A stretch of DNA of 64,000 bases from Octopus bimaculoides (taxonomy: Eukaryota). Positions within the stretch are counted from its first letter, which is position 1. Each line of letters opens with the position of its first letter. Positions 23,643 to 55,960 of the stretch are shown piece after piece. The stretch spans positions 37,968,989 to 38,032,988 of the forward strand of contig NC_069001.1 of assembly GCF_001194135.2 (NCBI RefSeq), in the 5' to 3' direction. The notes under the pieces are model-generated. The model saw only the letters and a program-made list of their open reading frames with translations. It searched no databases and was not told where the DNA came from. The position numbers were made by a program, and so were the translations under genes.

Positions 23643-23815
23643 TCAGCTGTCACCATCGAGGAATGACAAGTCCAAAGACAGGAAGTTATTCTCCACTTCT
23701 ATCCATTTCGCTGCTGACAGAAGTTCCTGTTCACCAAAACATTTGCCAATTAATTGTATTCCAAGAGGTAATCCCTTGGCAGATAATCGAGTTGGCACGG
23801 TAACGGCTGGTAGTC
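23643..23815 (-). CDS. QRSL1: QRSL1 exon 10, terminal (GLPAVTVP...[10 protein letters not shown]...DGDS*)
   Basis: Amidase C-terminal motif GLPxGxQxIG; TGA stop at 23643-23645. Confidence 0.96.
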
Positions 23816-25542: not shown

Positions 25543-25574
<32 letters not shown>

Positions 25575-28500: not shown

Positions 28501-29280
28501 AGGTTAATCTGACATAGATTTAACATCACTGCTTGGTCCTTTGGCCGAAGATGGAATATCTTTGACCACTTTGATCGTATGTCTACCTGACCAACGCTGA
28601 TCTGGAGCTGAACAACAACAACAACAGGAAAAAAAAAAACTACTTGGTTAATCATTCTGTTAGAAATAACAACCAAATTTCTCTGAAACACCAGCATGCT
28701 GTGTGAGAAAAGAAGGACACATTGTTACAGGAAGAGAGAGAGAGAGAGAGAGAAACAAATGGGACAGTCATGGACGGAGCGTTTTTGACTATATGTTTGC
28801 TCATCAATCAGGGCTGACCTGGGATGGAGATTATACAACAACAATAACAACAAAAGCAACAATAACCCCACTAACAACAAAAACATTAATTACAACAATA
28901 ATAAAAGTAACAACAACAACAACAACAAGGAGAATGTGTAAAAGAAGCAAAACCTGCAAGATTCACGGATGTCGTGTAGAGATCCTGCTCAGAGATGCGG
29001 GTACGATTATCCTCCTGGCAGAAATCCCTGTAGAGGGGAGCATCACTCACTGTTACTGGAGTAAGCAGCATGTCCACACCATTGGCAAACACTTGATGGA
29101 AGTCAGTGGTGATGAGTCGGCGGAGTTTCATGGATTGGGCCACATATTTGTTGTAGTTGCTGTAGCATGGACAGTACAGAGAGAAAAAGAGAGAGAGAAA
29201 GGGATTAAAGTTGATGATATATTTGATGAAATATATATTTCATCAAATACATATATATATATATATATACATACAAGTAT

Positions 29281-29361
<81 letters not shown>

Positions 29362-32155
29362 TATGTATATATATAGTTGAACAAACTGTTCCTAGGACTT
29401 ATTTCTTCTTCTTCCTCCTTTCCTTCTCCTCCTCCTTGTACTTCACTTTTGTTTCCTGATCGTTTTCCTCCCTGCTCCTTCCCTTTTTCTCCCACCCACC
29501 ACATCATATCCACCCCATATACTCACCCCGCCTCCACACTTTTAACTTTGTTCTTTCTTTCTCCCCCCCACCAATAGTTCCCCAACAACAAGGTCTGAAG
29601 GACGCACAATGTAACAGTACACCTTTGATGGATGCAGGTCTGAGGAAGATCCCCTCCATTCTCTAAAACCCCAAGTATTACATGATAGAATTTCTGCGTA
29701 AACTGGCATCACAAATGGAGATGGGAGGGAAACATGTGTGACTAATAATTGAAGAGGGGTCAAAGAATTTTCCTTGTCTTCTTTTCATTGGATTATTTAC
29801 TCTTTGCCAATCCATATGATGGTATAATCATCATGAAACTTGGATTTCCTACACCAGAAGTATTCCAGCCTTGGTTTGGATCCTGACAGTGTTCATAGCC
29901 CAGCATTCAGGTCGAGTACTTCTCTGGAAAACCCCCCAACTTCACATCCAACCTGACCGTAGCCATTTGCTCTCTCTCTCTCTCTCATAAATATATGGTT
30001 AGGGCAGCGGACTCGTGGTCGTAGGATCATGGTTTCGATTCCCAGACCGGGCATTGTGAGTGTTTATTGAGCGAAAACACCTTAAAAGCTCCATGAAGCT
30101 CCTGCAGGGGGTGGTGGTGAACCCTGCTGTACTCTTCCACCACAACTTTCTTTCACTCCTTCCTGTTTCTGTTGTGCCTGTATTTCAAAGGGTCAGCCTT
30201 GTCACACTCTGTGTCATGCTAAATCTCCCCGAGAACTACATTAAGGGTACACATGTCTGTGGAGTGCTCAGCCACTTGCACATTAATAAATGAGCTGCAA
30301 CGTCACTAATGCCAAGCTGTATCGGCCCCTTTGCCTTTCCCTTGGATAACATCAGTGGCATGGAGAGGAGAGGCCGGTATGCATGGGCAACTGCTGGTCT
30401 TCCATAAAAAAAACCCTGCCCAGACTTGTGCTTCGGAGGGTAACTTTCTAGGTGCAATCCCATGGTCATTCATGACCGAAGGGGGTCACAACAACAACAA
30501 CACAACAATATAAATAATGTAAATATATATCTTGAAATACAATACTTTATACATACATTGAAGCCAGGATGCTGTACCAAAGAAGTGTGTATATGATTAA
30601 ATTATAATAATGGACCAAAAGAAATAGCAGTTGAATCTTCCTCCAATCACAACTTAAATACTCAACCTGTTAGAAATAGCAGCCAAATCTACCTTACAAC
30701 ATAACCTAGCGACTAAACATCCTAAAAATTGGAGTCATATCCTCCTCTGATCACACAACCAACTAGAAGTTGCAGCTAAATCACCCTCGAATCACATGCA
30801 ATCTGCAAAGACATCATTAAAATCTCCCTCCAGGTGCACCCGACCTGCTAGAAATAGATGCAAAATGCCCTTTCAGTTACACCTTGCCTCCGCAAAAACT
30901 TTCAGAAACAGCAGCCAAATCTACTTCACATTATTTACTACCAAATGAAAATAGGAAGGACACATTAGGAAAAATTAACCCAGAGTGTATATATATACTA
31001 TGCCTGAAAAACAAAGACTAGATGGTCACATATGGAGTGTGTTAGTTAATTGGTCAGATGGATCAGGTCTCACATAGGAAAACAACAACAACAGCAGCAG
31101 CAGCAGTAGCAGCGATGAGACAAAAGTTTTCCATTACCATAACTGTCTTTGAAACATCTGTTACACTGTGTGAATGTGTGTGTGTGAATGCGTGTGTGTG
31201 TTTGTGTGTATTTACACACATACGTATGCTTAGAAGTAGGCTCTGTGTATTGATTTTGTACACACACATGCAAATATATATATGTGTGTGTGTGTGTAAG
31301 TGTGTGTAGAAAATCAATACATAAAATATACTTCTAAACAGTAGTTCATGCTACACATAGACCATCAGAACACACACATACGCATACATACATGCACACA
31401 CACACATACTACATGAAGCACAAGTGTGGCCCAGTGGTTAAGAAACTTACTTCCCAATGACATGGTTTCAGGTTCAGTCCCACATCACAGCACATTGGGC
31501 AAGTGTCTGTCACTACTGCCATTGGACCGACCAAAGCCTTCTGGTTGGATTAGGTTGGCAGAAACTAAAAGAAGCCTACCATGTGTGTGTGTGTGTGTGT
31601 TGTCTTTTACTTGTTTCAGTCATTAGATATATACACACACACATATATATATACGATGGGCTCCTCTCAGTTTCTGTCTATCAAATCCACTCACAAGGCT
31701 TGGTCGGCCCAAGGCTATAGAAGAAGACACTTGCCCAAGGTGCCACGCAGTGGGACTGAACCTGCAACAATCATGTGGCTGGTAAGCAAGCTACTTACCA
31801 CACAGCCACTCCATGTGTGTGTGAGTGTGCATGCTTGTGCCTCTTGTAATGAGCCCCTGAAAGAATGAATGGCAAAACTGTCTAAGGCAGGGTTTGAACT
31901 CAGATTATAGGAATAAAAACTGCAAAATACTGTGTCTTGCATGTTGACAACTCTAAACACACACACCCTATCACAACCGCTACCACACTACATTCTACAG
32001 GTACACTACAACCACAACAGTCTATGCTATACATGCATACAAACACACAATGAATTACATCAACACACACCCACACACACACAGAGCAACATCTGTCACA
32101 CTGAGTAATCAAATATAAAATTTAAATACTAGGATATAAGATAATGTAGTGGTGG

Positions 32156-32189
<34 letters not shown>

Positions 32190-32841
32190 GGTGGTGGTGG
32201 TGGTGAAGGCTAATGAGTCAGCCTTCCCCACCTCCGCCCTCCTTCCACCTTCATTTTTGTATTTTGGGTTTTTCATTTGTTATCTTTTACTTGTTTCAGT
32301 CAGTGGACTGTGGCCATGCTGGAACACCACGCTGAAGAGTCTAGTCGAGCAATTTTGACCCCAGAACTTATTTTCTAAGCTTGGTACTTATTCTATCAGT
32401 GTCGTTTGCCAAACTGCTAAGTCACAGAGACAGACAAACACCAACTGTCAAGCGGTGGTGGGGGACAAACACAAAAACACAAAAACACATACATACATAC
32501 ACACATATATATACAATGAGCTTCTTTCAGTTTCCACCTACCTAGTCCACTCACCAGGCTTTGGCCAGCCTGGGGCTATTGTAGAAGACACTTGCCCAAG
32601 GTGCCAGGCAGTGGATTGAAACCCAAGACCCTCCTTACTAACCAGCTGACCATAAACAGAATATAAATTTATGACAGGTTTAAACTGTAATTCTGTTACC
32701 TTTTTAGTAAAAAATAATTGCCGGCCAGAATCCTTCCTCGGACAACATCGTTGAAACCTTGGTGCCGGCTGGTGGCATACAATTGCTCTGTGGAGGCCAT
32801 AATATTAGCACGGTGACCTGCAAAGATTGAAGGTAAACAAT

Positions 32842-32882
<41 letters not shown>

Positions 32883-32892
32883 NNNNNNNNNN

Positions 32893-32946
<54 letters not shown>

Positions 32947-33981
32947 ACATACCTATATCATCATTATTATTTAACATCCATGAGGATTGCACGAGGCCCC
33001 AGGTGTCTGCTTTGGCTTGGTTTCCATGGTTGGGTGCCCTTTCTGACACCAACCACTTTACAGAAGGTACTGAGCACTTTTTAGGTGGCATCATCATCCT
33101 CATCATCATCTTTTCCATGCTGGCATGGGTTGGCTGGTTTGACAAGATCTGGCAAGGCCAAGGGTTGCACCAGGTTTCATAATCTGTTTTGGCTTGATTT
33201 CTACAGCTGGTTGGCCCTCGTGCTGGTGGCACGTAAAAGCACCCACTACACTCTCAGAGTGGTTGGCATTAGGAAGGGCATCCAGCTGTAGAAACTCTGC
33301 CAGATCAGATCGGAGCCAGGTGCAGCCATCTGGTTCGCCAGTCCTCAGTCAAAGTGTCCAACCCATGCTAGCATGGAAAGCAGACGTTAAACGATGATGA
33401 TGATACACACACATATATGTAGACTGTATGTTGAATGTATAACGCATGTCTCTAGATAAATATGTACACACACACACATTTGTGTCTGTGTTGAGGCTGT
33501 ATGTTGAATGTGTACTGTGTGTAGGTGATATGTATGCCTCTTGTATATATGGTGTGTGTGTAGCTACAAGTAAGACAGAGAGAAGAGAGAAGAGAGAGTC
33601 ACAACTTACCATATTTGATTCCATCATATCTTGCCATGTTGGATGCCACCTCACAACAACACAACACTACATAACAGCTTGAACCGTAATTGAAGTGTGG
33701 TAATGATACATCTACTACCTTGGCGCCAGCCCTCTCTAACTGGTCTGAAACTCTTGTCCATTCCTCAATTATCTCTGAAGAAGCCGCAGACAAGTAAGCT
33801 TCCTGCAAACACAAAAAGTGCCAACGTTTGGGTTATTTCATTAAGAATTTATTTTAATCTTTTCGTTGTCATATTTCGGTTGAAATGCTCTGGCTTTGTT
33901 TCAATTAATTTTGAAAATATTAAAATATTGAAGAATTTAGTAAAGAATATATATATATATCTATATCTATCTATCTATTTA

Positions 33982-34025
<44 letters not shown>

Positions 34026-37000
34026 AATATATATATTGTGTAAGAGATGGGTTGACCAGATATAAAAATTCATAAAAATGTCAAAAGAAAAGAAAATGTA
34101 CTTTACCTTAGGAATGCCCACTGTTATACCAACCATTGAGGGATGCTCATCAATGGAGAGTGGCTGGAATTTATTGGTCACTGTAGTGGAGTCTTTGATG
34201 TCATGACCTCTCAAAATATCTGAAATATATATGATGGATGGTGTAACATGTATAGGTATACATACAGACAGACAAACATACAGACAGACAAACATACACG
34301 CATATACATATACATGTATGTATGTATATTAAGTTGGAAAGAAAGTCCTGTTGCTACTCACTGAATATTAAGGCAGCGTCATCTACTGTTTTAGCCAGGA
34401 TACCAGGGACATCAAAGGAGTTGACGAGAGGGATCAGCCCATATCTTGATAAACTGCCATAGGTTGGCTTCAGACCAACAATGCCACAATATGCAGCAGG
34501 GTTTCTAGTTGAGCCTCCAGTATCTGATCCTAGGGCCCTGGTGTAAAGAAGAAAGGAAGAAAAAATGAGAAAGAGAAAAATAGTTTTGTTAAATAAGTAG
34601 AATATGTGCTGCTGTGAAGGTTTAATAAAGCTGAAACATGTACAGTTCTTCCCTCCCCTCCTCTCAATAAGGGTGGCTCTGCCATGCATTTAATTTCTAA
34701 TTAGCATCCCTATATTTTTCTTGTCCGTCTGTGTCTCACCCCACTCTCTTTATATATATATATGTCACAAAAGTGACAGAGGGTACTAACTAGTATTGCT
34801 TTTGCTAAAAATAAGAGTTAAAACTCCAAAGTCACAAAAGCGCTGTCTTAATGACTGGCAAAGGGAGGTAAGTTAATAGTGTACCTAGATGGATCCCAAT
34901 TTCAGATTTTGATGGAGACCATCTTAATCCTCATCAGCAACTCTTAATGCCTAGGGTTAAACTCAACATATTCTGTCAGTCTTATAAAATTTATCTCCCT
35001 TTGAGACAGTGCTTTTGTTTGGCTTTTGAGTTGTTTTAACTCTTATTTTTAGCAAAAGCGGTGCTAGTCACTACACTCTGTCATTTTTGTGACTTCTTTT
35101 AATTTTGGTTTTGGCTTCTAATTGCTAATAAACCACACCTTTTAATTTGTTGTTTACACTTTTACCATTTTGAAAATCAGCAAATGTTTTCAACGGTTTT
35201 TCTTATAAGACTGATGGAAGTAGTTGAATTTAACCCTAGGCATTAAGAGAAATTGGATGTCTTACCCAAATGCAATTCCTGAAGCCACTGCGACAGCGCT
35301 CCCACCAGAACTTCCTCCAGTAATGAACCAATCCTCATCATCCAGCCACTGTTTGTGTCGCCTTTCATGGCTTAACAAGTTGTCTGTCTGTTGGTCCCAT
35401 GACCTCTGAGGAGGGGCCGAGCTGTCCTTTTCCTCATTTCCTGAGATGGTAGGTTGGATAGGTTTATCATTGTTACTCTCTAAATTTCCTTTCGGACCAG
35501 TCAAATGTTTGGTGCTGGAGCGGTCAAATGGATACTTCCAAGGATTCTTCACTGGCCCAAAATGGCTATCAATGCTGCCGGCCCTGAAAGTAGAAATATT
35601 CCATTTGATAACAAAATAAGAAAGAAACAAGATTTCAAGAAGAAAATCAAACAAAATTGAAAGACAAGACACAAATTTTCTCAGTTTGATCTTTGGGAAC
35701 TGTTGTACCCTTAGATCACAGATCTGTGGAATTACGCAACTGAGGCAGTGAATCATCAGAGTTTAATTAAAGTGTTAAGAAGGATCATCATCGTATGAAA
35801 TCCACTTTTCTGTGCTGGCATGGGTTGGACAGAATTTGTTGAGGCAGATTTTCCACAGCTGGATGCCTTCCCTGTCACCAACCCATACCTGTTTCCTGGC
35901 AAAGTATCTTCCGGTGGTCAGACATGTTTTTCATTGAAGACTAGAAACAAACAACCCCGGCTGTATGATGGTGATATTCGTTTACAACCATCACATGATG
36001 TCAAGACACACATAAACACACAGAGGCATTCATACATATACACAACCACATCTTACCCATGCCAGCATGGAAAGTGGACATTAAATGTTGATGTCCAGCA
36101 GCAGGCTTTTTACAGTTTCTGTCCACCAAATCCATTCTAAAAGGCTGGCCTGAGGCTAAGTGGGATAGTTGGACCCAATGGGAATGCCTTGTGGTGTTTG
36201 TTCCAACATTTTGCACTTTGAATTCAAGTCCCACCGAGGTCAACTTGGCTTTACATCCTTTCAAGGGTTAGAAGAACAGTAGCAATCACAGGTGGTGGGT
36301 TAGTGGGACTAGATACCTTGTGGTATTGGTTCTGGCTCTTTGAAATCATCATCATCAGTATTGCAATAACACTACTTACCCCATGGCAAACTCGTCCATG
36401 TTTGTCTTACCAATTATGGTGGCACCTTGTTGCAGTAATTTCTCTACAACTGTGGCATTGTAGGGTGGCATGTAATTGTGCAACATTGCTGAGGCACATG
36501 TTGTCCGTACACCTTCTGTACTAAAGTTGTCCTTAATGGCAAAAGGCAGACCTTGAAGTATCTTGGAGCAGCTGGTCTCTGAAATGTACATGCAGAAGAA
36601 CATTATTATTATTATTATTATCATCATCATTATTATAAGTATTATTATTATTATTATTATTAAGGTGGGGACCTGGAGGATTGTTAGCACACCCCGAGTA
36701 AAATGCTTAGTGGTATTTTGTCCTTCTGTACGTTCTGAGTTCAAATTCTGTCATCCAAACATTGGATTTGTTAGTTTCTATCCAGTCTCCCTGGCAGATG
36801 TTTGTGCCGAATGTGACTTTGGAGTCCAAGTCAGTGGTGAAAGAGTCATGGGCAGAATTCACACAGGGTGGTCAGTGCAGGTCGAGGATGTTGAAGACGC
36901 TCCTTTCTTCTCCTGTGCTTTACCTCCTCATTCTGTTGTCTGTTCTGCTCAAAGGAGCTGGCTCCATTGTGGATGGCAGTCCTCCAGTCCGTCCTATCCA

Positions 37001-39755
37001 TGGCAATCTGTTCGCATGAGGATGGCTGGATGTTAGTTTGAGCCAGGGCTCGTTTAAGCTGGTCTTTAAAATTGAATTTCGGGCCTCTTCTGGGTCTTGT
37101 TCCAATTGCAAGTTCTCCGTAGAGCATGATCCTCTACAGATATATATATACGGATATATATATATATATACACACACACACAAAAACAAAATATGAGGTA
37201 AGGGAAATAACTCATCAGTTAGTAGCATGTATTGAATAGCACAGACAAATACAGGCCTACCAAATACCATACAACTTGCATGAACTCTTTTAACTGTTTT
37301 ACTTGTTTCAGTCACTGGACTGTGGCTATGCTGGAGCACCACTTTGAAGGGTTATGTGCAAATCAATTCTTGGACTTATTTCAAAACTGGGATTTATTCT
37401 ATTAGTGTTTTTTGGCTGAACTGTTTAAGTACTGAGGACATAAACAAACCAACACCGAATACCAAGAGGTGAAAGGGCAGACACAAAGACACACCCACAC
37501 ACAATGAGCTTCCTCACCGTTTCCATTTATGAAACTCATTGAGAAGGCATTGGTCAGCCCAGGACCATGGTAGAAGACACTTGACCAAGGTGCCCCATGG
37601 CGGGAGTGAACCTGGAACTGCAGGGTCGAGAAGCAAGCTTCCTAACTACACACAGGCTTCAGTACAGTTTCCATCTGTCAAGCTTCATTCATAGAGTTTT
37701 GGCCAAGTTACAGCACAGTGGGATCGATCTTGGAACGATGTGGTTAATCATGAAACAATTTACCTGTGTTGTTGTTAGCAACAGGTGTGTGTGGCTCCGT
37801 CTGGTGGTGAGGATTGGAATAACATTCTGTGATGAACATATTCAACTCTCGTAACTGCTTGGCACGCTGGACACATTTTTTGGAAAGTTCCACAGGACAG
37901 ATCCGGTGCTGTTTGATTTGGTGGAGGGCCTGCAAAAAAACACAAAGGAAACATTGCTGAATGGTTCCACCATGACCACCACCATTTATATATATAAATA
38001 AGAAATAGTGGTACAACAAGGCACCAATGTTTGCTGGAAATAACAGTCAATAACAATACCATACTCTGTAAAGCTTATATTTGCCAGAATATATTTACAT
38101 CATCATCATCATCGTCATTTAATGTCCGCCTTCCATGCTAGCATGGGTTGGACAATTTGACTGGGGACTGGCGAATCAGATGGCTGCACCAGGCTCCAAT
38201 CTGATTTGGCATAGTTTCTTCAGCTGGATGCCCTTTCTAACGCCAACCACTCCGAGAGTGTAGTGGGTGCTTTTACATTCCACTAGCACGAGGGCCAGGC
38301 AGGCGGTAAATATATTCTGGCAAAGATGTATGCGAGCAGCAAGCTTAAAAAATTTTCATCTTGGCAGAACATCATAAAAATGGACAACCCAGAATGGAGA
38401 ATCTAGTATTGCAATGATATTTAAAATTTTTACAGAAACCTTTTCCACTGACCTCAGTTCTGTTAATGGCGTTCAGCCGAATATACTGGCAAGATGTAGT
38501 TATATTTTAAAATTTTGTCACTGGTGAATCCTAGCTGATGAGGACTAATCAAATTTATGATAACAACCTTATTTTGGAAAGTTCGAAATTCAGGTCCTAG
38601 ACTATCCATTCTAGGTTGTCCATTTTTACAATGTTCTGCCTAGAGGTGAGACGAAAATTTTTAAAGTTTGCTGCCTGCATACATCTTTGCCAGAATATAT
38701 TTCAGTGAAGCTTTACATAGAGTCAGATCATTACTGACTGTTATTTCCAGCAAACACTGGTGCCTTGTCATACCACTACCTTTATTTGGCTGGAAAGTGA
38801 TATTATTGTATTGCAATGATATTTAAAATTTATATATATATACACTCTCTCTCTTTACTCATTTACTTGTTTCAGTGATTTTGACTGCGGCCATGCTGGA
38901 GCACCGCCTTTAGTCGAGCAAATCGACCCCATGACTTATTCTTTGTAAGCCTAGTACTTATTCTATCGGTCTCTTTTGCCGAACCGCTAAGTTACGGGGA
39001 CGTAAACACACCAGCATCGGTTGAGCCCCTGGTGCAGCCTTCTGGCTTGCTAGTCCCCAGTCAAACCGTCCAACCCATGTCAGCATGGAAAGTGGACGTT
39101 AAACGACGACGATGATAATGATGATACAGTGAATAAATTGTCGTCTAAATTACGCAAAAATGAAAATAACACTGACATCTCACTTTAACAGATATATGTA
39201 CTGAAATTACATCAAAATATCTTGAAATACTAAAGAGTAAATTTATTCAATAAAATGCCTCTAAACTACGACACCTTGATTATGAGATAAGGACGTAACA
39301 TAACTGTAAATCTGTTAAGGATATTCGCTGCCAGGTTTAGATTGAGCCACGATGTACGTTAGTTTGTATCTGAGTTGTGTACGGCAGGGTGTGGACACGT
39401 TGCCGGTTTCAACACTTTTAGTTCTTTTTGAGACATTTCAGGATCAAACAGGTCAACTTTGTGAACCGGATCGGACACTGAGAATGGATTTTCAATCCGG
39501 GACTGAAATGGGGACTGTCCCGATTGTCCAAGACAAATCGGGACGTATGATGGTAAGTCTAAGATGCTACTCTATACCGTTGTCTCTCTCTCTCTCTTTC
39601 TGTGTGTATGACTGTAGCCCGATGATTGTAACAAGTAAAAAATAAAAGCTAGAAGAGATATATCGGTGCTATTAATGAAACATAAGATAACAAAAGACAC
39701 AAGAGTGGCCGTACAATACCTCCTTGAGTGAGAGAGATAACCAGTGTGTAGTCAT
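23643..39755 (-). CDS. QRSL1: Glutamyl-tRNA(Gln) amidotransferase subunit A, mitochondrial (GatA); complete 10-exon CDS, 1698 nt, 565 aa
   Basis: Exons 39755-39720, 37929-37764, 36578-36380, 35583-35266, 34537-34362, 34219-34107, 33802-33610, 32817-32700, 29159-28954, 23815-23643 join in frame across GT-AG introns. The amidase-signature motifs [23 protein letters not shown] and [12 protein letters not shown] (Lys/cis-Ser/Ser triad) are present, as is [10 protein letters not shown]. Confidence 0.96.
24860..25490 (+). mobile_element. CR1-like LINE RT remnant in QRSL1 intron 9
   Basis: [24 protein letters not shown], and [24 protein letters not shown]. Confidence 0.85.
25940..25976 (+). ncRNA. 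Minimal type I hammerhead-like motif (variant core CUGUUGA)
   Basis: TCTTT-CTGTTGA-A-GAGC GTA GCTC-GAAAC-GTC^-AAAGA. Stems I and II are perfect and stem III is the palindromic ACGT. Confidence 0.55.
27775..28510. repeat. Diverged tandem repeat, about 300-bp period, about 2.5 copies
   Basis: The aaaggaaagctttat anchor recurs at about 27791, 28089 and 28390. The first two units share a near-identical ~48-bp block (cttaaatgtcaaacaattgtctccatag.ttgtgaggggctgtgatt). Confidence 0.9.
28954..29159 (-). CDS. QRSL1: QRSL1 exon 9 ([16 protein letters not shown]...TTSVNLA)
   Basis: Homologous to GatA KAQKVRRLI...VDVLLTP; cag acceptor and G|gttttg donor. Confidence 0.95.
29995..30500 (+). mobile_element. 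tRNA-derived SINE family A, alternative-tail subtype
   Basis: Same head and core as 44946-45330 but a different 3' region, ending gggggtc(aca)n. The same tail occurs at about 21760-21930 (-). Confidence 0.85.
32700..32817 (-). CDS. QRSL1: QRSL1 exon 8 ([39 protein letters not shown])
   Basis: Conserved GFxxxVxxRIxxG motif; cag acceptor and AG|gtaac donor. Confidence 0.96.
33610..33802 (-). CDS. QRSL1: QRSL1 exon 7 ([10 protein letters not shown]...[14 protein letters not shown])
   Basis: Conserved GatA motif; cag acceptor and G|gtaagt donor. Confidence 0.96.
34107..34219 (-). CDS. QRSL1: QRSL1 exon 6 ([13 protein letters not shown]...VGIPK)
   Basis: GxDxxDSTT motif; cag acceptor and AAG|gtaaag donor. 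Confidence 0.95.
34362..34537 (-). CDS. QRSL1: QRSL1 exon 5 ([18 protein letters not shown]...)
   Basis: Nucleophile Ser motif; cag acceptor and A|gtgagt donor. Confidence 0.97.
34764..35093. mobile_element. Non-coding fold-back element with ~87-bp terminal inverted repeats, in QRSL1 intron 4
   Basis: Arms 34764-34850 and 35002-35093 are reverse complements (gtcacaaaa.tgacagag...gcttttgctaaaaataagagttaaaac...gc.ctgtct). No clear target-site duplication. Confidence 0.9.
34887..34942 (-). ncRNA. Type I hammerhead ribozyme-like motif inside the fold-back element
   Basis: AGTTG-CTGATGA-GGATT AA GATGG TCT CCATC AA AATCT-GAAA-T TGGG A-TC^-CATCT. The core is intact, stem II is extended, the triplet is AUC, and stem I pairs 4 of 5. 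Confidence 0.7.
35266..35583 (-). CDS. QRSL1: QRSL1 exon 4 ([15 protein letters not shown]...[21 protein letters not shown])
   Basis: Amidase signature; cag acceptor and GG|gtaag donor; open frame throughout. Confidence 0.97.
36380..36578 (-). CDS. QRSL1: QRSL1 exon 3 ([23 protein letters not shown]...[11 protein letters not shown])
   Basis: Catalytic Lys motif; cag acceptor and GG|gtaagt donor. Confidence 0.97.
36770..37130 (-). mobile_element. RTE-clade LINE 3' end in QRSL1 intron 2
   Basis: [27 protein letters not shown]...[15 protein letters not shown], the typical RTE ORF2 C-terminus. Confidence 0.85.
37764..37929 (-). CDS. QRSL1: QRSL1 exon 2 ([35 protein letters not shown]...)
   Basis: tttttttgcag acceptor and G|gtaaat donor; homologous to the GatA N-terminal helices. 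Confidence 0.9.
38006..38778. mobile_element. Large fold-back element (~170-bp arms) in QRSL1 intron 1, left arm interrupted by a family-D SINE
   Basis: 38006-38076 plus 38307-38406 are reverse-complementary to 38597-38778. Confidence 0.9.
38531..38600 (+). ncRNA. Type I hammerhead ribozyme-like motif inside the fold-back element
   Basis: CTAG-CTGATGA-GGACT...AGTTC-GAAA-T TCAG G-TC^-CTAG. The core is intact, the triplet is GUC, stem I has 4 bp, and stem III is A-U plus U-G. Confidence 0.65.
39720..39755 (-). CDS. QRSL1: QRSL1 exon 1 ([12 protein letters not shown])
   Basis: 36-nt ATG exon ending GAG|gtattg in phase 0, which matches exon 2. It resembles the human N-terminus MLGRSLRE. Confidence 0.8.
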
Positions 39756-40332
39756 TCTTTTAAAAGCGATTTGGAAACAATAATTTCTCTGAAATATTAT
39801 AATTGTTGTTGTTGAAGAATCGAAAAAAAATTTCGACCTTGAACATGCTAACCTGGAACCGGTATCAGAGTAAAACTAGTTCTACCGACTTTGTGATCCG
39901 GCCATGTCGATAGAGAGAGAGAGAGAGAGAGAGAGTAGGAAAGAGATATGAGTGATACGAGAGAGAGAGAGAGAGAGAGAGAGAGTAGGAAAGAGAAAAG
40001 AGTGATACGAGAGAGAGAGAGAGAAAGCGGGTGAGAGATATGAGGTTAGAATGAAAGAGAGAAAGAAAAAAAAAACAGGAAGAGAGAGACGGAGAGAGAA
40101 AGAAAAAGAGGAACAAAGAGACGGAGAGAGAGGATTTGGCTGGTAACAAATTTACAGAGTAGATTAATTGTGTCGACACCGCACCAATATAAACTAAACG
40201 AAGCCGCCGCACGTTGTTTTATTGTCTTGTGTTTTGTAAATGATGCCCAGAGCTGCATCTCGGTTGAGGTTTATGGCCTTTCTCAGGATATACTGTATCT
40301 TTTAGTGCTCCCGCCACCGCTAACGACTGAAT

Positions 40333-40364
<32 letters not shown>

Positions 40365-40365
40365 G
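39756..40365. promoter_or_regulatory. Putative bidirectional promoter and 5' UTRs of QRSL1 and RTN4IP1
   Basis: About 610 bp between two divergent ATGs. It is visibly CpG-richer than the gene bodies and contains a (GA)n-rich block. Transcription start sites cannot be determined from sequence. Confidence 0.7.
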
Positions 40366-40675
40366 ATGATGATGTTGAGGATGTCGAAGTTATATAATAA
40401 CATTTCGTCTTTGAAGCTGTTGTCAAATAATTTCAAGACTGGGGCGCACGGCAGCAGAGTCACCTTGGTGCAGCAGCTCCTCCAATGCCGCAGCTTTTCT
40501 GACGGCGAACAGACCAGCTTCAGCCACCGAATGTCGGCATGGAATATCTATTCTTACGGCTGTGACCAGATGACCTTGTCCAAAACCACTCGTGTCCCGT
40601 CTGTGTTGGACCCTGGAGATGTGTTGGTCGACGTCCATGCTGCCAGCGTCAACCCGATTGATGTCATGATGAGAG
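40366..40675 (+). CDS. RTN4IP1: RTN4IP1 exon 1
   Basis: Presequence plus VHAASVNPIDVMMR; G|gtaag donor. The initiator is uncertain among in-frame ATGs at 40366, 40369, 40372 and 40381. Confidence 0.92.
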
Positions 40676-43600
40676 GTAAGGCTGTTTTCGCTGCTTTACC
40701 TCGCATTTACACCCATCTCCAACTTTTCTTCGTGCCAGAATCATTTACCGACCCTAGTTCAAATCCTGTCGGGTTCAACTGCTTTCCATTCGCTCTGAGT
40801 TTTATAAAATAGATTACCAGTTTACTACCGGAGTTGATTGAAACGACCAACGTCCCGTCCATATCTCCGGCCTTGAGCCCTATATGCTAGAAACAGTTAT
40901 TATTTTCAAAATGTAGTAAATCGGCAGAATTGTTAGCGCGTCGGACAAAATGCTTAGCGGTATTTCTTTCGGCTTTTTGCGTTCAGAGTTCAAATTCCAC
41001 AGAGGTCGACTTTGCCTTTCATCCTTCAGGGCCAGTTAAATACTTCAAAATCGTTAGATTGGAATTAAAATTAGAAGCAATTATTTTAAAGCGGTGGACT
41101 GGCAAAATCGTTAGAGCGCAGAGAAAATATTTTGTGATATTTGTTCTGGTCCTTTGTGTTGTGAGTTCAAATCCTACGCAGGTTAGCGTTGCCTTTCATC
41201 CCCGGCAAAAACAAAATAAATTACAAGAAGACCGTTGTAGTTCTTTGGGAACATTGTACTACAGAAATAGAATAATGAAGGAAATGAAGAAGACTTCGAG
41301 CCATGGAAGTTGAAAAAATCTCGAAAGGTTCTTCAACTTTCATCTCTTGCATCCACATCATGTCTTCATATCAGTGCTGTTTCTTTTTCTCTTGCCCATA
41401 TACTCACTGATCTTCAAGTTCTTTTTCCTGCTTTCATATCCTCAGTTGTACTTTTGACCCTGTAAATTGTCCACTCCAATAACAGCTACCTCTGTTGGGT
41501 CTACTCATTGTAACACTCCTCATTCAGCAATCCTTCATCTAAAAATGTTTCCTCATCTCTTTCCTACCAGCATCAGTGAGTGTAGGTGCATCGCTGTCAT
41601 TTCAACAGCTCCTTCATTCACCCGACACCTTGCTTCTCAACCACGACCCTTCACGTCTCTCTTCCTCTCATCACAGAACGTGGTAAGCCGCTTGTTTTCA
41701 GTTCCTCTCCATGAGAGATATTCCTTACAGTGGACTGAGATGATCGAATGCAGTTTTCTGGACACTGATGATTTGGCTCAGCCAATTATTGGACATTCGG
41801 CCAGTGTTGGCTGCAGTACTTTTTGGTGCTGAAGGCCAACTCCTGCACATATGCATACAGAAATATACACATATAGATAGACAGACAGAAAGATGGAGGG
41901 ATAGATAGATACATACATAGATGGATAGATAGACAGGGAGAAGACCCAGCAAGTAAAGTGAGATCACAGCCATAGCCTACACCAGTGTTGCATAACCAGC
42001 CCACATAAAAAGTACCTTAGGATTGTCAGGTGACATGCTGTGCTTGAGGAAACCTATTGAGTCAAGTAAATCAAAATCAAATGGAAATTGTAATTGTGGC
42101 CGATACCAGTGCTCCCTGACTGGCTTCCGTGCTGGTGTCATGCAATAAGCACCATTCATGTGTGGGTCATTGCCAGTGCCGCCCAACTGGCTCTCATGCT
42201 GGTGGCACGTAAAAAGCACCCATTACACTCTCGGAGTGGTTGGCGTTAGGAAGGGCATCCGGCTGTAGAAACTCTGCCAGATCAGATTGGAGCCTGGTGT
42301 GGCCTCCTGGCTTGCCAGTCCCCAGTCAAACCATCCAACCCATGCCAGCATGGAAAGCGGATGTTAAACGATGATGATGATGACAGACAGACAGATGGAC
42401 GGGTGGATGGCTCGACAGACAGGTAGATGGATAGAAAACATTGCAATTTATTAATTGTACATGATTGATAGAAACACTTTGCCTCTCCTCATTCACTTAA
42501 AAAGAAATATGTTTGCACACATAAATAGAGGGAAAGAGGAGAAACGGTGAGGGAGGGAAAGAGGAGAGCAAGAGAGAGAGAGGGAGAGAGAGAGAGAGCA
42601 AAATATTAAAACATCTGTAATTCCAAAACGGCCAAAATGTCTCCGACCCGCCTGATTCTTAGCTCCTCTTCCAGCTCTCCTGGCGTTTCCTCTTTCCTAT
42701 TTATTCCCATTTTCTTCCAGGTCTGTTCATTATCTGTTATGACCCCCAGGAAAAGACTAACGATTATAATGAATGTTAACCCCAGGTCAGCTTTGTTTTT
42801 TGAACAGACATATGATCAAAGACGTTCCAGGCATGACCAGCCCATTAAAGTTTTATGCAGTCAGTTGTCCTTCTTTTAGGGGTCCACTCATAGATGTCGG
42901 TATGTATGTCTAGCAACATCCCTGTCCCCTAGATGTCAGCAGAACATGTCATTGTGAGTTTTACTTGTTCTTCATTGAAGGTCAGTAAGTGGTCCGAAGT
43001 TGAAGTATTTAGTGACCACCCCTGATGAGGAAACCCAGTCTATTGTGCCATCGTCTTGTAGGATGTCTCAGTGGTTTGATTCTATTAACAGATGGTTACG
43101 GTGAAAAACTCATCAACCTCATCCGATGGCAACTTGGCAGCAAGCATTTTGTTGGTTCTGAATTTCCGCTCATTTTGGGACGAGACTTTTCCGGAACTGT
43201 TGTCTCCGTTGGAAAGAATGTGACCAGCTTTCAGCCGGGCGACGAGGTTTGTCTCTTTCATTCATTTATTCTTTCTGTTATCATCATTGTTGTCATCATC
43301 ATCATCATCACCACCACAACCAACACTGCCACCATCATCATTTACCATGATCTTCAGCATCACAGCTACCACCATCATCATCATCATCATTATGACCAAC
43401 ATCATCACTATCATCACGACTAATGGGTGTGTAAAGGGCTTGTACAGTGCCATATAAAAGCACCCAGTGCCACCCTGTAAAGTGGTTGGAATTAGGAAGG
43501 GCATTCAGCCGTAGAAACCATGCCGAACCAGACTGGATCCTGGGGCAGCTCCCCCAGCTTGCCAGCCTTGGTCAAACCGTCCAGCTCGTGCCAACATGGA

Positions 43601-43876
43601 CAACGGACGTTAAGTGATGACGACGATGATGATGATGCACATTGCTTTTAATTATTCATGCGTCATCTGGTCGCTTTAAGATTTCGATAACATGATTGTA
43701 TATTTTCAAAATGACATTGTAGGGTAAGTGTGAGAAGCCAGATCTGGCTAGTTTGAACATAAAAAAAAAGGTCAAATATTTGATCTGGATATGGACGGTT
43801 TAAATGCTAAAGGCTTAAAGACAGCAAGGTATGATTTGAGGGCAATTATACTTGTACACATGAATGTATACTTGCA

Positions 43877-43919
<43 letters not shown>

Positions 43920-46900
43920 GTATGTGTGTGTGTTTTAAATGAATCTTTCTATTTGTGTTTTTTTCTTTTATTTTCCTTTTTACCCCCTAGGTATGGGGAG
44001 TTGTGGGGGCACACAACCAAGGCAGCCACGCCCAGTTTTGTGTGGCATCAACAAAGGAGGTGAGTTTGAATTAATCATCATCATCATCATCATTATCATC
44101 ACCAGTGAAACAATGGAGTCAATGTAATCGACTCATCCCTTCCCCCCGAAATTGCTGGCCTTGTGCCACAATTTGAAATCATTATTATTATTATTCTTTT
44201 AACCCCAAATTTTGTTGGAACTCCTGGAATCTTGCTTGAGTTGTGGCCTTGCTACCTGTTACCTGTGCTTTTCAACTCTCTGATACCTTCCTGATGGTTC
44301 TGGCCATGCCAAGGAGTTAAACCTTTCGCAACGTCTCTCCTGGGTACTCCATTGGAACCATTTCTTTTATATTTCTCTCAATACCCTTCAATATTGTCCC
44401 CCAAGGCTACAACAATAACTGGCACCATCAGGCTATTTCGTATTTACAAGTCTCCTTTCTTGTCTTCCTTCTTAACAGCCCATGGGACAAATGGGAATGC
44501 AACATCAGTCATGGAACACATGTGGTTTACTTTGTCGTTCGCCACCACCACCACCATGTAGTGGCTGGGCAGAATTGTTAGGGTGTCAGGATGGAGTGTA
44601 AAATCGACTTTGCTGAGATTTGAACTTAGAATGAAGCAAACCTCGTCAAACATTGTTTTTTTCCGATTCTCTCAGGATTCTGCTATCCATCCTTCCATCG
44701 CTCTGTTGACGGAATTGTAAGGTTTGCTGATAGTTGTTGTTTAACCCGTGGTTCATTCTGACCAATGTCTAGGTCGAGAGGCGTTCCAACCATGACCACA
44801 CACTGTCAGTTTAGAAGTATATCCAAGACTTCTTCTTTAGTTGCCATGTTCAGAATGTAGGACGGAGGCGATCATGCCCTACCAGAGTTTTCTGTAGCAG
44901 TTCCACATCCGGGTGTTTAATGCCTCTTTCATCCAACTAGTTCGTGGAGGCGCAATGGCCCAGTGGTTAGGGCAGCGGACTCGCGGTTTCGATTCCCAGA
45001 CCGGGCGTTGTGAGTGTTTATTGAGCGAAAACACCTTAAAAGCTCCATGAGGCTCCGGCAGGGGATGGTGGCGAACCCTGCTCTACTCTTCCACCACATC
45101 TTTCTCTCACTCTTTCTTCCTGTTTCTGTTGTGCCTGTAATTCAAAGGGTCAGCCTTGTCACACTCTGTGTCACGCTGAATGTCCCCGAGAACTACGTTA
45201 AGGGTACACGTGTCTGTGGAGTGCTCAGCCACTTACACGTTAATTTCACGAGCAGGCTGTTCCGTTGATCGGATCAACTGGAACCCTCGACGTCGTAAGC
45301 GACGGAGTGCCAACAACAACAACAACAACAACCAACCAGTTCATTAAGCTTGACATCCAGATCATCCCCCTTCAATCTTTCCAGTCATTGCCCCTTTCTC
45401 CAGGCCCTCTTTCCTCATTACATGACCAAGAAATCTCAGTTGTTTGGCCCTTCTCTCACCAAGCGGCTTCCTATTCGCTGCGGCCCGGCTCATCACTTCT
45501 TCGTTAGTCTCTTAGTCCGTCTATGCTGTTCTCAATATTCGCCTTAAGAATCGCATTTCACAGCTCTCGTAAAATACATTATCGAATAACACCTTTCTTT
45601 ATTTACAGTTGTAATTTGTGGCCGGTTGAGCAACAAGCCAGAGAAGCACTTCCGTTTGGTTTGTGCTGTGTGTGTGTGTAAGCGTATAGAATATATTTAT
45701 CACAGTTAGTAGATCGGTATTAAAAATCGGGGTAAATAACTCTTGCGTTCTTACGATAAAGGAAGATAACTCTTGCGTTCTTACGATAAAGGGAGATAAC
45801 TCTTGTGACAGTTTGTGAGGGGAAAGAATTGGTAGTTAAGCCTGGAAAATATATATTGTATATAAACACACACACATACATACATATATGTGTGTGTGTG
45901 TGTGTGTGTATATAATGAAAGGATATATATTCCGACTAGGTCACTGGCCTGAGTAGAATCGTGTGAGCCCATTGCTATATCAAATGCATTTTCCCTATCT
46001 AACTTACTCCATATTTTATATATTCTAAAACACACACACCCACATCATGCATGCACACACTCAGGTCTAACCATCTATCCATCATCTGTCTGTCTGTCTC
46101 TATCTAAGTTTTGAGTGTGTATGTATTGTATGTGCTTCTTCTCCCTTGCTCTCCAACCATAACTCTTGCACCTCCTCTTACATCCCCCAGATAATCATAT
46201 ATATATATATATATATATATATANNNNNNNNNNNNNNNNNNNNNNNNNNNNNNNNNNNNNNNNNNNNNNNNNNNNNNNNNNNNNNNNNNNNNNNNNNNNN
46301 NNNNNNNNNNNNNNNNNNNNNNNNNNNNNNNNNNNNNNNNNNNNNNNNNNNTATATATTATATATGCATATAAATATACATATCTTTATATATCTTTTTA
46401 TATTATATCTGCATCTATCTCTCTTTATAATTGATTGTCTTTTTGTGTTAGCTGTGCCACAAACCCTCCACTCTCACTCACATTGAGGCTGCTTCTCTGC
46501 CTTACGTGGCACTCACAGCTTGGAGTGCCCTGTGTTCTGTTGGAGAAATCACTCAGCAAAAAGCACCAAACTTGAGGTAAGTCCTTCACTCAACATCATC
46601 TGCGTGTTTTTTGTGTTTGTTTTTATTTCACAGGATCTCTTGTTGTTTTTGTTGTTGTTGTGTAGCCATGGGCTGACTCTGGTTAGAGTAACATCTATGG
46701 GACATAACTTGGTTAGTTCATCAATAGTTGAAGGGCAGAGGCTTGATTAATTGATCCACAGATTTATAGTAGATAAGTGATTAGTTAATCCACTTGTCTA
46801 TGGAACATTGGGGATCAGTTGATCCAAGGGTACATTAGATAATAGAGACCTAGATACACAATGCTCTTTGAAAAAAAGGCAGACTTGATGTTCCCAGCAT

Positions 46901-48028
46901 CACTAACCTTTGATCATGGTTGCGCTTGATCTGGGCTGACCTAGGGTTAAATGCTTCTATCACCACCACCACTACCAACAACAACAACAACACCAGCAAC
47001 AACATTCAGTTGTATTTCTTTATCTTTTCCAGAGTCTTTATTCAAGCTGGTTCTGGTGGAATTGGAACTTTTGCTGTTCAGGTTGGTTTAAACAGAATTT
47101 TGTTTTTGTTTTAATATAGTTCAGTTGTGTGTGTGTGTGTTCATATTCCTGTTTTTTCTTTTTCTTTGTGTCGCACGCCTGTGACATCAGACTAGTATAG
47201 CAACATAAGTTTATAGATACAAAGGAAATGTCAAACATATCTCATCATACTGTACAGTGATGTACACTAAGTGACGGAGGTGTAAACGCACCAACATAGG
47301 TTGTCAAGCGATGGTGGGGGACAAAAACACAGACAAACACACATACACATATATGTATATATACGACAGGCTTCTTTCAGTTTCCGTCTACCAAATCAAC
47401 TCACAAGACTTTGGTCAGCCCAAGACTACTGTCGAAGATACTTGCTCAAGGTGCCATGCAGTGGGACTGAACCTAGAACCTTATAGTTTGGAAGCAAGCT
47501 TCTTACCATGCAGCCATCCCCCCCCCCACATGTATATTTGTCATGTAACCCTCCTTTGTTCTTCCAGCTGATGTCAGCATGGGGTGCCCATGTGACATCA
47601 ACATGCAGTACAGATGCCATTGACCTTGTGAGGTCACTTGGAGCCAATGTGGTCATCGATTATAAAACACAGAATGAAGAAGACGAACTGAGACAGATGG
47701 ATGGGTGAGTTCATTATTCTTTTGTCCTTCTTTTCTCATTCTGTCTCATTTCTCTCTCTCTCTCCCCTCACAATTTTTTTGTCATCTCCCCCTTCTACTC
47801 ACTCTTCTTCCTCTTCCTTTTCAGCTTTCACCTTTACCTTGATGTTCTTGGTAAGAAGCCGTCTCGGAATGTCTTGAAGAATTGGTGCAATGCCAAGTAT
47901 GTGACAATAAAGACGCCATTCCTTGAAGACACAGACACCCATGGTGTACCTGCTGGCTTCCTCCGCTCGGCCGGTTCCCTTGGCTGTAACATTCTCGAGG
48001 TTTGTCAATGCTAATTGGTGATGGTGCC

Positions 48029-48074
<46 letters not shown>

Positions 48075-49833
48075 CATGTGTTTAGTCCTAGGTCAGCCTC
48101 TGAGCTAGCAGACCTGTTGTCAAAGACAATCCAACAATGACCAGCCAGTCTGTTGTTTTTCCAGACTACATAGCCAATGTGTCCTTGTTTTTCTTTAGAC
48201 AGTAGGACATAATTTGAGTGAGAGGTTAGCTGCTATTTCTTGCTGGTCAAGCAACCATGTCGATTCTTTATGGTTGCTGTTTAGCCCCGGGTCACTTCTG
48301 ATCCAAAAGATCTATGATCAAAACTGTCCTAGCTGTGACCATCCTGTCTTTTAGTTAGGCATAGTGTACCTAAGACTACATTATTTAACGTTGCTTTCTT
48401 TGTTGTTGTTGTTGTTTAACCCCGGGTCAGCCCTCATCCAAAATGACCTTTGACCATGGTGTCTTTACCGTGGCCATCCTGTCTGTTACTAACACATAGT
48501 GTACCTAGGACTGTATTATCTAATTTGTCCTTTTTGAAATGAAAGGGTGTGATTTGAAGGAGATTTAGCTGCTGTTTCTAGCAGTTGAATCACACCAGAG
48601 GCTATGGTTCAACTCCCTTTTTAGCACATGCATGCGTGTTTGTGTGTGTCTTTTGTGCTTACATCTGTGTCCATATATGTATGTATGTATGTGTATGTAT
48701 ATTCATATATGTGCATGTCAGTGTGTATGTTTGTGTGTTTGGAAAGGGTTTTTCTGCTACCCTACAGTATGGCCAGTAACCCGTCCACTATTGCCAAGAC
48801 TCTCACACATCACAATAAAATACAGCCCCACCCCCATCCCTTATCTCACACCAAAAAATGTCTTCCTGCATATAATTACGACTTTGTTAGACACAACCCA
48901 CTTCCTTGCCAGACACACCTCTTTACTAGACATGACCTAACTCTTCACTACTAGACACACCCACATTATACTGCGACACACCCACTTCTCAATGTAATTT
49001 CCTTCTTGTACCCTCATCTCTCCTCCCATCTCTATAACAGTTACTCCCACTATCACCTTTATAAAAGAGACCCTCACTACTCCATTGATCCTCTCCTCCC
49101 ACTACCACCTCTGCTACCATGATGTTGGCTTATCATCTTCGGTCATGTTTCAGAATCTAAAGAATGGACAGAGTTATCGCTGGGCGTTCTTCATCCCTGA
49201 TTGGAGGGCACTGAGGTGTATTGGTCAGCTGGTGGACAACGGTCAGGTAAGACAAATATCGTGCATGCACACAAAACACACACACACCCCCCTATCGCCT
49301 AATATCACCCCTGTGTCTGGAGTGGCTCTACCATTGCTCTCTCTGTATTGTTCTAGATGAAAACGCACCCACGTCTACACACATGTACAACACACATTCT
49401 ACACACACATGCACATGCACTACACACACACATACACACTACATACACACTACATACACACACACATTCTACACACACACACACCTCCCTATACCCTATA
49501 CATCCCCCTTTTCCTGGTATGACTCCACCTTCTCCCCATCTGTATCTATTGTACCACATTGAACCAGTCACACCCATACCTTCACCTGATCTACACACAC
49601 ACACGTCCCCACATACATTTACACCCCATACATGTGCACACCCACACACCTACACCTTCATATCTTCCACTCCCATATCCAGTGTCCCTCTCCTATCTCT
49701 CTCTCTCTTGTACCAGATCAAACCAGTCATCGACAAGGTGTTTCCCTTTCATCAACTGCCTCACGCCTACAACCATGTCGAGGCCGGACACAGTCGAGGT
49801 AAAACAGTCATTGATGTAAAGTGTACAGAGTAA
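40366..49833 (+). CDS. RTN4IP1: Reticulon-4-interacting protein 1, mitochondrial (NAD(P)H quinone oxidoreductase, MDR family); complete 9-exon CDS, 1230 nt, 409 aa from the first ATG
   Basis: Exons 40366-40675, 43092-43246, 43991-44059, 46452-46576, 47033-47081, 47568-47704, 47825-47999, 49154-49246, 49717-49833 join in frame. Motifs [51 protein letters not shown] and GHSRGKTVI are present. The N-terminus is basic and Ser-rich like a mitochondrial presequence (..CRSFS). Confidence 0.96.
43092..43246 (+). CDS. RTN4IP1: RTN4IP1 exon 2
   Basis: DGYGEKLINL...[12 protein letters not shown]...PGDE; acag acceptor and GAG|gtttgt donor. Confidence 0.96.
43991..44059 (+). CDS. RTN4IP1: RTN4IP1 exon 3
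   Basis: VWGVVGAHNQGSHAQFCVASTKE; tag acceptor and gtgagt donor. Confidence 0.93.
44946..45330 (+). mobile_element. tRNA-derived SINE family A, full length, with (CAA)n tail
   Basis: A-box tggcccagtgg and B-box ggtttcgattccc. Degenerate 13-bp target-site duplication ccaactagttcgt / ccaaccagttcat. Confidence 0.9.
45900..46030 (-). mobile_element. Penelope RT remnant in RTN4IP1 intron 3
   Basis: WSKLDRENAFDIAMGSHDSTQASDLVGIYIL matches the PLE motif FDV.MGS.DGAE..ELVG.Y.L. Confidence 0.7.
46452..46576 (+). CDS. RTN4IP1: RTN4IP1 exon 4
   Basis: [27 protein letters not shown]...; tag acceptor and gtaagt donor. Confidence 0.96.
47033..47081 (+). CDS. RTN4IP1: RTN4IP1 exon 5
   Basis: [16 protein letters not shown] nucleotide-binding motif; cag acceptor and gttggt donor. 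Confidence 0.95.
47568..47704 (+). CDS. RTN4IP1: RTN4IP1 exon 6
   Basis: LMSAWGAHVTSTCSTDAIDLVRSLGANVVIDYK...; cag acceptor and gtgagt donor. Confidence 0.96.
47825..47999 (+). CDS. RTN4IP1: RTN4IP1 exon 7
   Basis: FHLYLDVLG...KYVTIKTPFLEDTDTHG...; cag acceptor and gtttgt donor; phases fit both neighbours. Confidence 0.92.
48080..48600 (+). repeat. Three diverged tandem modules of a dispersed repeat family (gtttaaccccaggtcagccctgatc...gaccatcctgtc)
   Basis: Modules start at about 48081, 48280 and 48415. Related pieces lie at about 28560-28700, 30620-30980, 42770-42850 and 44730-44800. Confidence 0.7.
49154..49246 (+). CDS. RTN4IP1: RTN4IP1 exon 8
   Basis: NLKNGQSYRWAFFIPDWRALRCIGQLVDNGQ; cag acceptor and gtaaga donor. 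Confidence 0.95.
49717..49833 (+). CDS. RTN4IP1: RTN4IP1 exon 9, terminal
   Basis: IKPVIDKVFPF...GHSRGKTVIDVKCTE*; cag acceptor and TAA stop. Confidence 0.96.
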   Translation: MKPVIDKVFPFHQLPHAYNHVEAGHSRGKTVIDVKCTE

Positions 49834-55734: not shown

Positions 55735-55960
55735 CATACATACGCATATATTAGACGAACATGACATCGCGTTTCCTGGTTCGCTTGTGTATTTCGGTCG
55801 TCTGTCGGTTGTAGAAAGACTTTTATAAGAAATTCTGTTTGTTTTAAGAAACAACCGGTGTGTATAACAATGACGTAAACAGCCGGAATAATGATGAAAG
55901 CGGCCGGAGTAATGACGTAAGCAGACGGGATATTCAGGATTGATATACTGTACATAAGGT

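Follow-up and report, generated by a model that had tools for sequence, protein, structure and literature searches.

As a class, conserved ancestral microsyntenic pairs (CAMPs) of animal genes are disproportionately often oriented 5′-5′, closely spaced and co-expressed (Irimia et al., 2012; Genome Res 22:2356), and HSPD1-HSPE1 is named as the model case of a co-regulated CAMP. Among the 924 conserved human bidirectional pairs of Dávila López, Martínez Guerra and Samuelsson (2010; PLoS One 5:e10654, PMC2871058), RTN4IP1-QRSL1 is one of the ten most conserved; its two genes are 80 bp apart, and it has a conservation score of 0.13. The same study recorded the pair in human, mouse, chicken, Xenopus and Daphnia pulex (supplementary table) and in five teleosts (zebrafish, fugu, Tetraodon, medaka and stickleback). 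The protostome-deuterostome age of the pair was already known from that work, published in 2010; its species set contained no lophotrochozoan and no amphioxus. Here we describe QRSL1 and RTN4IP1 in Octopus bimaculoides, within a stretch of 64,000 nucleotides (NCBI RefSeq assembly GCF_001194135.2, contig NC_069001.1, positions 37,968,989 to 38,032,988 of the forward strand) that is called the window throughout. The two genes diverge from a spacer of 610 bp. We propose, with a probability of about 0.75 for the explanation as a whole, that the locus is the octopus copy of an ancestral bilaterian head-to-head pair that has persisted through constraint on its promoters.

The octopus locus is closest to the human pair on 6q21. 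The genes are orthologous, they lie 5′-5′ and the spacer is sub-kilobase in both species. The human distance of 80 bp is, however, taken between annotated gene ends, whereas the 610 bp in octopus separate the two ATGs, and the octopus spacer is rich in microsatellites and lacks the motifs for NRF1, YY1 and ETS. HSPD1-HSPE1 likewise consists of head-to-head nuclear genes for mitochondrial proteins, with a very short spacer, and is conserved across animals. HSP60 and HSP10 form one machine, though, while QRSL1 and RTN4IP1 act in different pathways, and the shared promoter of HSPD1-HSPE1 has been shown experimentally (we know of no promoter experiment on QRSL1-RTN4IP1). The HSPD1-HSPE1 pair also extends to fungi and unicellular holozoans, and its conservation score is 0.39 compared with 0.13 for the much patchier QRSL1-RTN4IP1. 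With the co-regulated class of CAMPs the present pair shares the 5′-5′ orientation across phyla and a spacer below 1 kb, the bidirectional-promoter signature of Irimia et al. (2012), but we met conserved intergenic sequence within octopods only.

The exons were first located by tblastn with approximate human QRSL1 and RTN4IP1 probes, which were then replaced by the database proteins. When the joined exon translations were searched against the database, the top matches were proteins of O. bimaculoides. QRSL1 isoform X1 (XP_014784695.1, 565 amino acids) maps to the minus strand of the window with 100% identity in 10 coding exons, and the RTN4IP1 homolog (XP_014784767.1, 409 amino acids) maps to the plus strand with 100% identity in nine. 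As these 19 exons match exactly, a chance match is impossible. The splice junctions of the mapped QRSL1 exons are good to ∼2 nt. The coding features and the spacer between them are as follows.

23643-39755, minus strand: coding span of QRSL1 isoform X1; the last codon ends at 23646 and is followed by the stop codon
39755-39720, 37929-37765, 36579-36379, 35582-35265 and 34536-34363, minus strand: QRSL1 exons 1 to 5
34217-34107, 33802-33608, 32815-32702, 29161-28952 and 23813-23646, minus strand: QRSL1 exons 6 to 10
39720-39755, minus strand: QRSL1 coding exon 1, a mini-exon of 12 codons with a GT donor after it
39756-40365, no strand: spacer between the divergent start codons, presumed to hold the divergent promoter region and both 5′ untranslated regions
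40366-49833, plus strand: coding span of RTN4IP1; the last codon ends at 49830 and is followed by the stop codon
40366-40675, 43091-43249, 43994-44059, 46452-46577 and 47034-47081, plus strand: RTN4IP1 exons 1 to 5
47568-47705, 47826-47999, 49154-49246 and 49717-49830, plus strand: RTN4IP1 exons 6 to 9
40366-40674/5, plus strand: RTN4IP1 coding exon 1, with GTAAG after it, encoding an N-terminus that resembles a presequence, and the first part of the ADH_N domain

The start codons of QRSL1 (39755, minus strand) and RTN4IP1 (40366, plus strand) thus diverge. Their distance of 610 bp sets a bound on that between the transcription start sites only where no non-coding exon precedes the coding exons of either gene. 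A preliminary description of this DNA, made from the letters of the sequence, had placed the two ATGs correctly, and both RefSeq proteins map exactly onto them. The outer ends that it had given to the locus, 39720 and 40675, coincide exactly with the splice donors of the two first exons. Its naming of the genes as QRSL1 and RTN4IP1, their divergent orientation and the homology to the human 6q21 arrangement are supported as well.

The amidase domain (Pfam Amidase PF01425, E 3.5e-115) runs along the whole QRSL1 protein. The top NCBIfam match is gatA TIGR00132 with 455 bits, the next family reaching 269 bits; this score is slightly under the bacterial equivalog cut-off of 481, in a match that is split by an octopod insertion of ∼70 amino acids. 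The closest database relatives are all named mitochondrial GatA. The motifs KDNF, GGSSGGS and GSDTGGS are all present, encoded by window exons 3-5, and from established knowledge of the family we take them to represent the Ser-cisSer-Lys catalytic triad. We regard as solid the prediction from these matches that octopus QRSL1 is the GatA subunit (amidase-signature family) of the mitochondrial GatCAB Glu-tRNA(Gln) amidotransferase. In mitochondria, GatA acts in the GatCAB heterotrimer together with GATB and GATC. The octopod insertion is of low complexity and lies between GatA core motifs (35265-35582, minus strand). It is longer and more repetitive in Argonauta, which has a protein of 633 amino acids, and it divides the hidden Markov model match in two.

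RTN4IP1 carries the Pfam domains ADH_N (PF08240, GroES-like), ADH_zinc_N (PF00107, Rossmann) and ADH_zinc_N_2 (PF13602). Across molluscs, vertebrates, Lingula and Exaiptasia, its best matches (38-65% identity) all bear the name RTN4IP1. The protein contains AGSGGIGTFAVQ, a glycine-rich dinucleotide-binding stretch (AGSGGIG), and EAGHSRGKTVIDV, the C-terminal GHxRGKxVI motif, both of which have counterparts in the human protein. Residues 1-45 include no acidic residue but abundant K, R, S and L, a composition consistent with a presequence. Its predicted assignment to the mitochondrial NAD(P)H oxidoreductases of the MDR superfamily is likewise solid. The roles described for RTN4IP1 in mitochondria are in coenzyme Q (CoQ) synthesis and in late complex I assembly (PMC10830421, PMC12489013). 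The start ATG is conserved in O. vulgaris and Argonauta.

Two further observations concern the ends of RTN4IP1. Upstream of its ATG lies an open reading frame, MMPRAASRLRFMAFLRIYCIF (40240-40305, plus strand), which is in frame with the ATG but closed by a stop codon; it would be an upstream open reading frame of the transcript if transcription begins near the CCAAT/TATAAA sequence at 40184-40193. The last coding exon (IKPVID...GHxRGKxVI) is present as a single copy in the octopus window and as two tandem copies in both Lingula (locus L009, 13256-13363 and 15853-15960) and Exaiptasia (locus L008, 23753-23860 and 27449-27556). Both copies are equally similar to the octopus exon, which suggests alternative or duplicated terminal exons in Lingula and Exaiptasia.

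About half of the 610-bp spacer is simple repeat as detected by Tandem Repeats Finder. The spacer has a CpG observed/expected ratio of 0.97, and values of about 0.9-1.0 prevail from roughly 38.8 to 41.2 kb, compared with 0.46 for the whole window. Both gene bodies are depleted of CpG, with ratios mostly of 0.1-0.56 and a single 1-kb bin at 0.81, and the maximum of the genic span from 23 to 50 kb falls exactly on the two 5′ ends. Such a pattern is what a single promoter island, unmethylated in the germline, would be expected to leave between the methylated bodies of two housekeeping genes. Elsewhere in the window the ratio is mostly 0.1-0.56 also across 1-23 kb, and 0.7-1.2 in most of 51-64 kb; contrasts like this are typical where invertebrates methylate the bodies of housekeeping genes.

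Phylogenetic footprinting of Octopus against Argonauta identified two collinear conserved blocks, one on either side of the repeats. The elements in and around the spacer are listed here.

38800-41200, no strand: CpG-undepleted island over both 5′ ends, observed/expected ratio about 0.8-1.5
39833-39885, minus strand: octopod-conserved block 1, 77-129 nt upstream of the QRSL1 ATG
39908-40131, no strand: (AG)n-rich microsatellite and 50-bp repeat tract in the middle of the spacer (Tandem Repeats Finder)
40117-40181, plus strand: octopod-conserved block 2, 185-249 nt upstream of the RTN4IP1 ATG
40333-40364, no strand: (AC)16 microsatellite directly before the RTN4IP1 ATG (Tandem Repeats Finder)

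Block 1 shares 70% identity with Argonauta over a 54-nt alignment (E between 2.6e-4 and 2e-3); ACCGGTT (39863-39857) and CAAGGTCG (39841-39834) lie within it. Block 2 aligns over 65 nt at 68% identity (E 1.4e-4), a score attained in 0 of 100 shuffles; its 5′ third is GA-repeat-like, and in octopus CCAATATAAA (40184-40193) comes shortly after it. Both genera have microsatellite sequence between the blocks, differing in length and composition, with (TC)n/(TA)n arrays in Argonauta at the place equivalent to the octopus (AG)n tract. Most “bidirectional promoters” are now understood as two gene-proximal promoters within one open region. The octopod blocks look like such an arrangement, with a promoter close to each gene at either edge of a single open region, and not like one overlapping element. 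Neither ACCGGTT nor CAAGGTCR is enriched across the window, and their promoter-proximal positions may be taken as a lead only.

Some features of the spacers stand apart from the conserved blocks. Scans for tRNA genes found none in the window or in the Argonauta spacer. The latter contains a tRNA-like 3′ half (…GGTACCTACACCAGGGATTGAACG…; locus L001, ∼9760-9880), at which ARAGORN calls no gene. The spacer of the chiton Liolophura (locus L005, 6960-10000) contains several copies of a repeat resembling a short interspersed element (SINE), and because of these copies it is 3 kb long.

We surveyed the pair in other animals by inspecting the ±10 kb neighbourhood of the orthologues, re-checking every locus by tblastn with the octopus proteins. 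The called gene ranges begin at the ATG, and the distances are therefore from ATG to ATG. The following species keep the pair.

Argonauta hians: 5′-5′ pair kept, 1034 bp
Chiton Liolophura sinensis: 5′-5′ pair kept, 3041 bp, inflated by the SINE-like copies
Brachiopod Lingula anatina: 5′-5′ pair kept, 532 bp
Amphioxus Branchiostoma lanceolatum: 5′-5′ pair kept, 512 bp

By our count the spacer is sub-kilobase in four of five invertebrates, and it is 80 bp in human. In O. vulgaris, QRSL1 and RTN4IP1 have consecutive protein accessions. A QRSL1 mini first exon ending in ..LKE/GT adjoins the spacer in Octopus, Argonauta, amphioxus and Lingula, which speaks for common descent of the whole 5′ arrangement. 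The pair occurs in Deuterostomia, Ecdysozoa and Lophotrochozoa and was therefore, by parsimony, present in the bilaterian ancestor. We saw no sign of it in non-bilaterians, namely Exaiptasia in our survey and Nematostella, Trichoplax and Monosiga in the 2010 survey. A bilaterian origin of the head-to-head pair is well supported. The occurrences in cephalopods, a chiton, a brachiopod and a cephalochordate are additions to the published record, as are the bivalve, gastropod and annelid losses treated below.

The preliminary description had dated the linkage to the bilaterian ancestor, and the pairs in Argonauta, chiton, Lingula and amphioxus, together with the published vertebrates and Daphnia, agree with that date. 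It had also held that retention is notable in view of the rearrangement of coleoid genomes. This argument is weak, as squid keep as many ancient microsyntenies as scallop, with 275 retained metazoan microsyntenies in Euprymna vs. 216 in scallop (Schmidbaur et al., 2022). Neither gene is mentioned in the supplements of that paper. The description had named genes unlinked in most intermediate lineages as evidence against its claim. The synteny survey recovered the ancestral pair in several phyla, but in many intermediate lineages the genes are unlinked within 10 kb, and as regards obligatory linkage this comes close to contradicting the claim.

Persistence through promoter constraint could work as follows. 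Both genes would be transcribed divergently from one CpG island that is presumably germline-unmethylated and nucleosome-poor. Each gene would have its own core promoter beside its own conserved proximal block, at 39833-39885 for QRSL1 and at 40117-40181 for RTN4IP1, with a purine/pyrimidine microsatellite that evolves freely lying between the two blocks. In so short a spacer (∼1 kb at most), any break would then impair the promoter of one or both of these essential housekeeping genes, and the pair would persist. One shared region of open chromatin may also give broadly correlated housekeeping expression, and a shared promoter that co-regulates the two genes, as the preliminary description had suggested, is plausible from the layout of the spacer. 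The constraint would be moderate and not absolute, because several lineages have separated QRSL1 and RTN4IP1.

A number of results weigh against this explanation. The linkage can be lost: the two genes have come apart several times, and both were retained. No partner gene was found within 10 kb in the bivalves Pecten maximus and Mya arenaria, the gastropods Babylonia areolata and Lottia gigantea, the annelid Owenia fusiformis, the horseshoe crab Tachypleus tridentatus or the sea anemone Exaiptasia. In the species set of the 2010 survey, the pair was not reported for Drosophila, Anopheles, Aedes, Nematostella, Trichoplax or Monosiga (PMC2871058). The octopus spacer contains no motif for NRF1, YY1 or ETS/GABP and no cAMP response element (CRE), and in the five spacers compared no motif is common to all and nothing is conserved across phyla. 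The statement that we found on co-expression of human QRSL1 and RTN4IP1 is based on breast tumours. Most of the remaining genes that top its list of co-variation also map to 6q, and the tumour co-expression fits copy-number co-variation as well as promoter sharing. Finally, RefSeq QRSL1 isoform X2, a computational model prediction, begins at a different exon, 16 kb from the proximal QRSL1 exon 1 and 5.9 kb past the 3′ end of RTN4IP1.

55744-55767, minus strand: alternative first coding exon of QRSL1 isoform X2 (MSCSSNIC), exact mapping, GT donor (GTATGT)

With this predicted exon, the proximal promoter may not be the sole promoter of QRSL1.

Separations of this kind are also what would be seen if the ancestral pair had survived passively, only through the tiny target that a spacer of at most 1 kb offers to breakpoints and the essentiality of the genes, with neither regulation in common nor any functional coupling and with the mitochondrial theme being incidental. 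This is the simpler account. We regard this as somewhat unlikely, although several or more independent separations without loss of either gene speak for it. In Pecten, Mya and Babylonia both genes are on one chromosome but evidently apart, as random intrachromosomal scrambling predicts. Argopecten and Mercenaria also have both genes on a shared chromosome, an observation at the chromosome level and not one of adjacency. QRSL1 and RTN4IP1 lie on separate contigs in Potamilus, Batillaria, Nucella, Saccostrea and Ylistrum. We left Centropristis and Symphorus, in which the genes are on different chromosomes, out of the loss count because their RTN4IP1 entries are labelled “-like” and may be paralogues from whole-genome duplication. 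Passive survival is also in line with the absence of a cross-phylum motif, with the growth of the chiton spacer to 3 kb by SINE-like insertions and with a separate proximal conserved block for each gene. What it accounts for less well is that the pair has been kept in all three bilaterian superclades for more than 550 million years and is among the ten highest-ranking of the 924 conserved bidirectional pairs of human, that 5′-5′ pairs as a class are co-expressed above background (Irimia et al., 2012), and that a single CpG island covers both 5′ ends.

A stronger version of promoter constraint would make the spacer a true bidirectional promoter that couples mitochondrial translation, through the supply of Gln-tRNA(Gln), to CoQ synthesis and complex I assembly, and that functions in octopods via both blocks, including ACCGGTT and the nuclear-receptor-half-site-like CAAGGTCG. 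We consider this version doubtful. If it were true, lineages with a split pair would show measurable decoupling of expression.

The predicted X2 exon could in principle provide a structural lock in octopods. Because it lies beyond RTN4IP1, the whole of RTN4IP1 would sit within intron 1 of the predicted X2 transcript, and the genes would be inseparable without breaking that transcript. The X2 protein maps exactly, with its first exon at 55767-55744 ending in a GT donor. The region around this exon has a CpG observed/expected ratio of 1.16, and within 120 nt upstream of it there are two TTACGTCA (CRE-like), two TCCGGC and one ACCGGTT (region 55744-55960). This ACCGGTT is 86-92 nt upstream of the X2 ATG, on the same strand as that of the proximal QRSL1 promoter and at a similar distance; the window has only three ACCGGTT sites, one near the X2 ATG and another near the proximal QRSL1 ATG. 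Such a lock is nevertheless improbable. X2 is a computational model, the distal region shows homology neither to the proximal promoter nor to Argonauta sequence, some of the sequence upstream of it looks SINE-like, and the pair is conserved in phyla with no known exon of this type, so that nesting cannot explain the deep conservation. We also considered the distal X2 promoter as a duplicate of the proximal one and rejected this, as the two share no significant similarity. The sequence farther upstream of the X2 exon resembles a tRNA-derived SINE.

Separate origins of the adjacency in molluscs, brachiopods, chordates and crustaceans would fit the patchy distribution, with many lineages lacking the pair, but they are scarcely credible given the like orientation and compact spacing wherever the pair occurs, the QRSL1 mini first exon ending in ..LKE/GT at the border of the spacer in Octopus, Argonauta, amphioxus and Lingula, and the vanishingly small chance that one specific pair out of ∼10^4 genes would form independently in at least five lineages.

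The octopus locus adds one lineage to the known range of the pair and is not a discovery, as both genes are already in the RefSeq annotation and the deep conservation of the pair was published in 2010. The survey gives a first sketch of the distribution of the pair in Lophotrochozoa and cephalochordates. Its patchy retention is a usable natural experiment for comparing shared regulation with small breakpoint target size. QRSL1 and RTN4IP1 are human mitochondrial-disease genes, and whether they share regulatory elements bears somewhat on how non-coding variants at 6q21 are interpreted.

The remainder of the window contains a few other features. An open reading frame of 266 amino acids at 353-1153 (plus strand) and an open reading frame fragment at 36849-37133 (minus strand), in QRSL1 intron 2, are transposon-like by eye; a Pfam search of these transposon-like frames gave no match. 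There are many runs of N (assembly gaps), flanked by (TA)n/(TATG)n microsatellites. A wider conserved block around the pair was not found, since tblastx of the window for FAM76, MRPS9, Utp14, Cep57, transaldolase, RPB2-like and ERM returned microsatellite noise, and the window gave no FAM76 signal. In Lottia (locus L011, 19548-24545) and Owenia (locus L007, 26326-28200), in which QRSL1 is no longer the neighbour, FAM76 follows RTN4IP1 tail-to-tail, and RTN4IP1-FAM76 may be another conserved pair.

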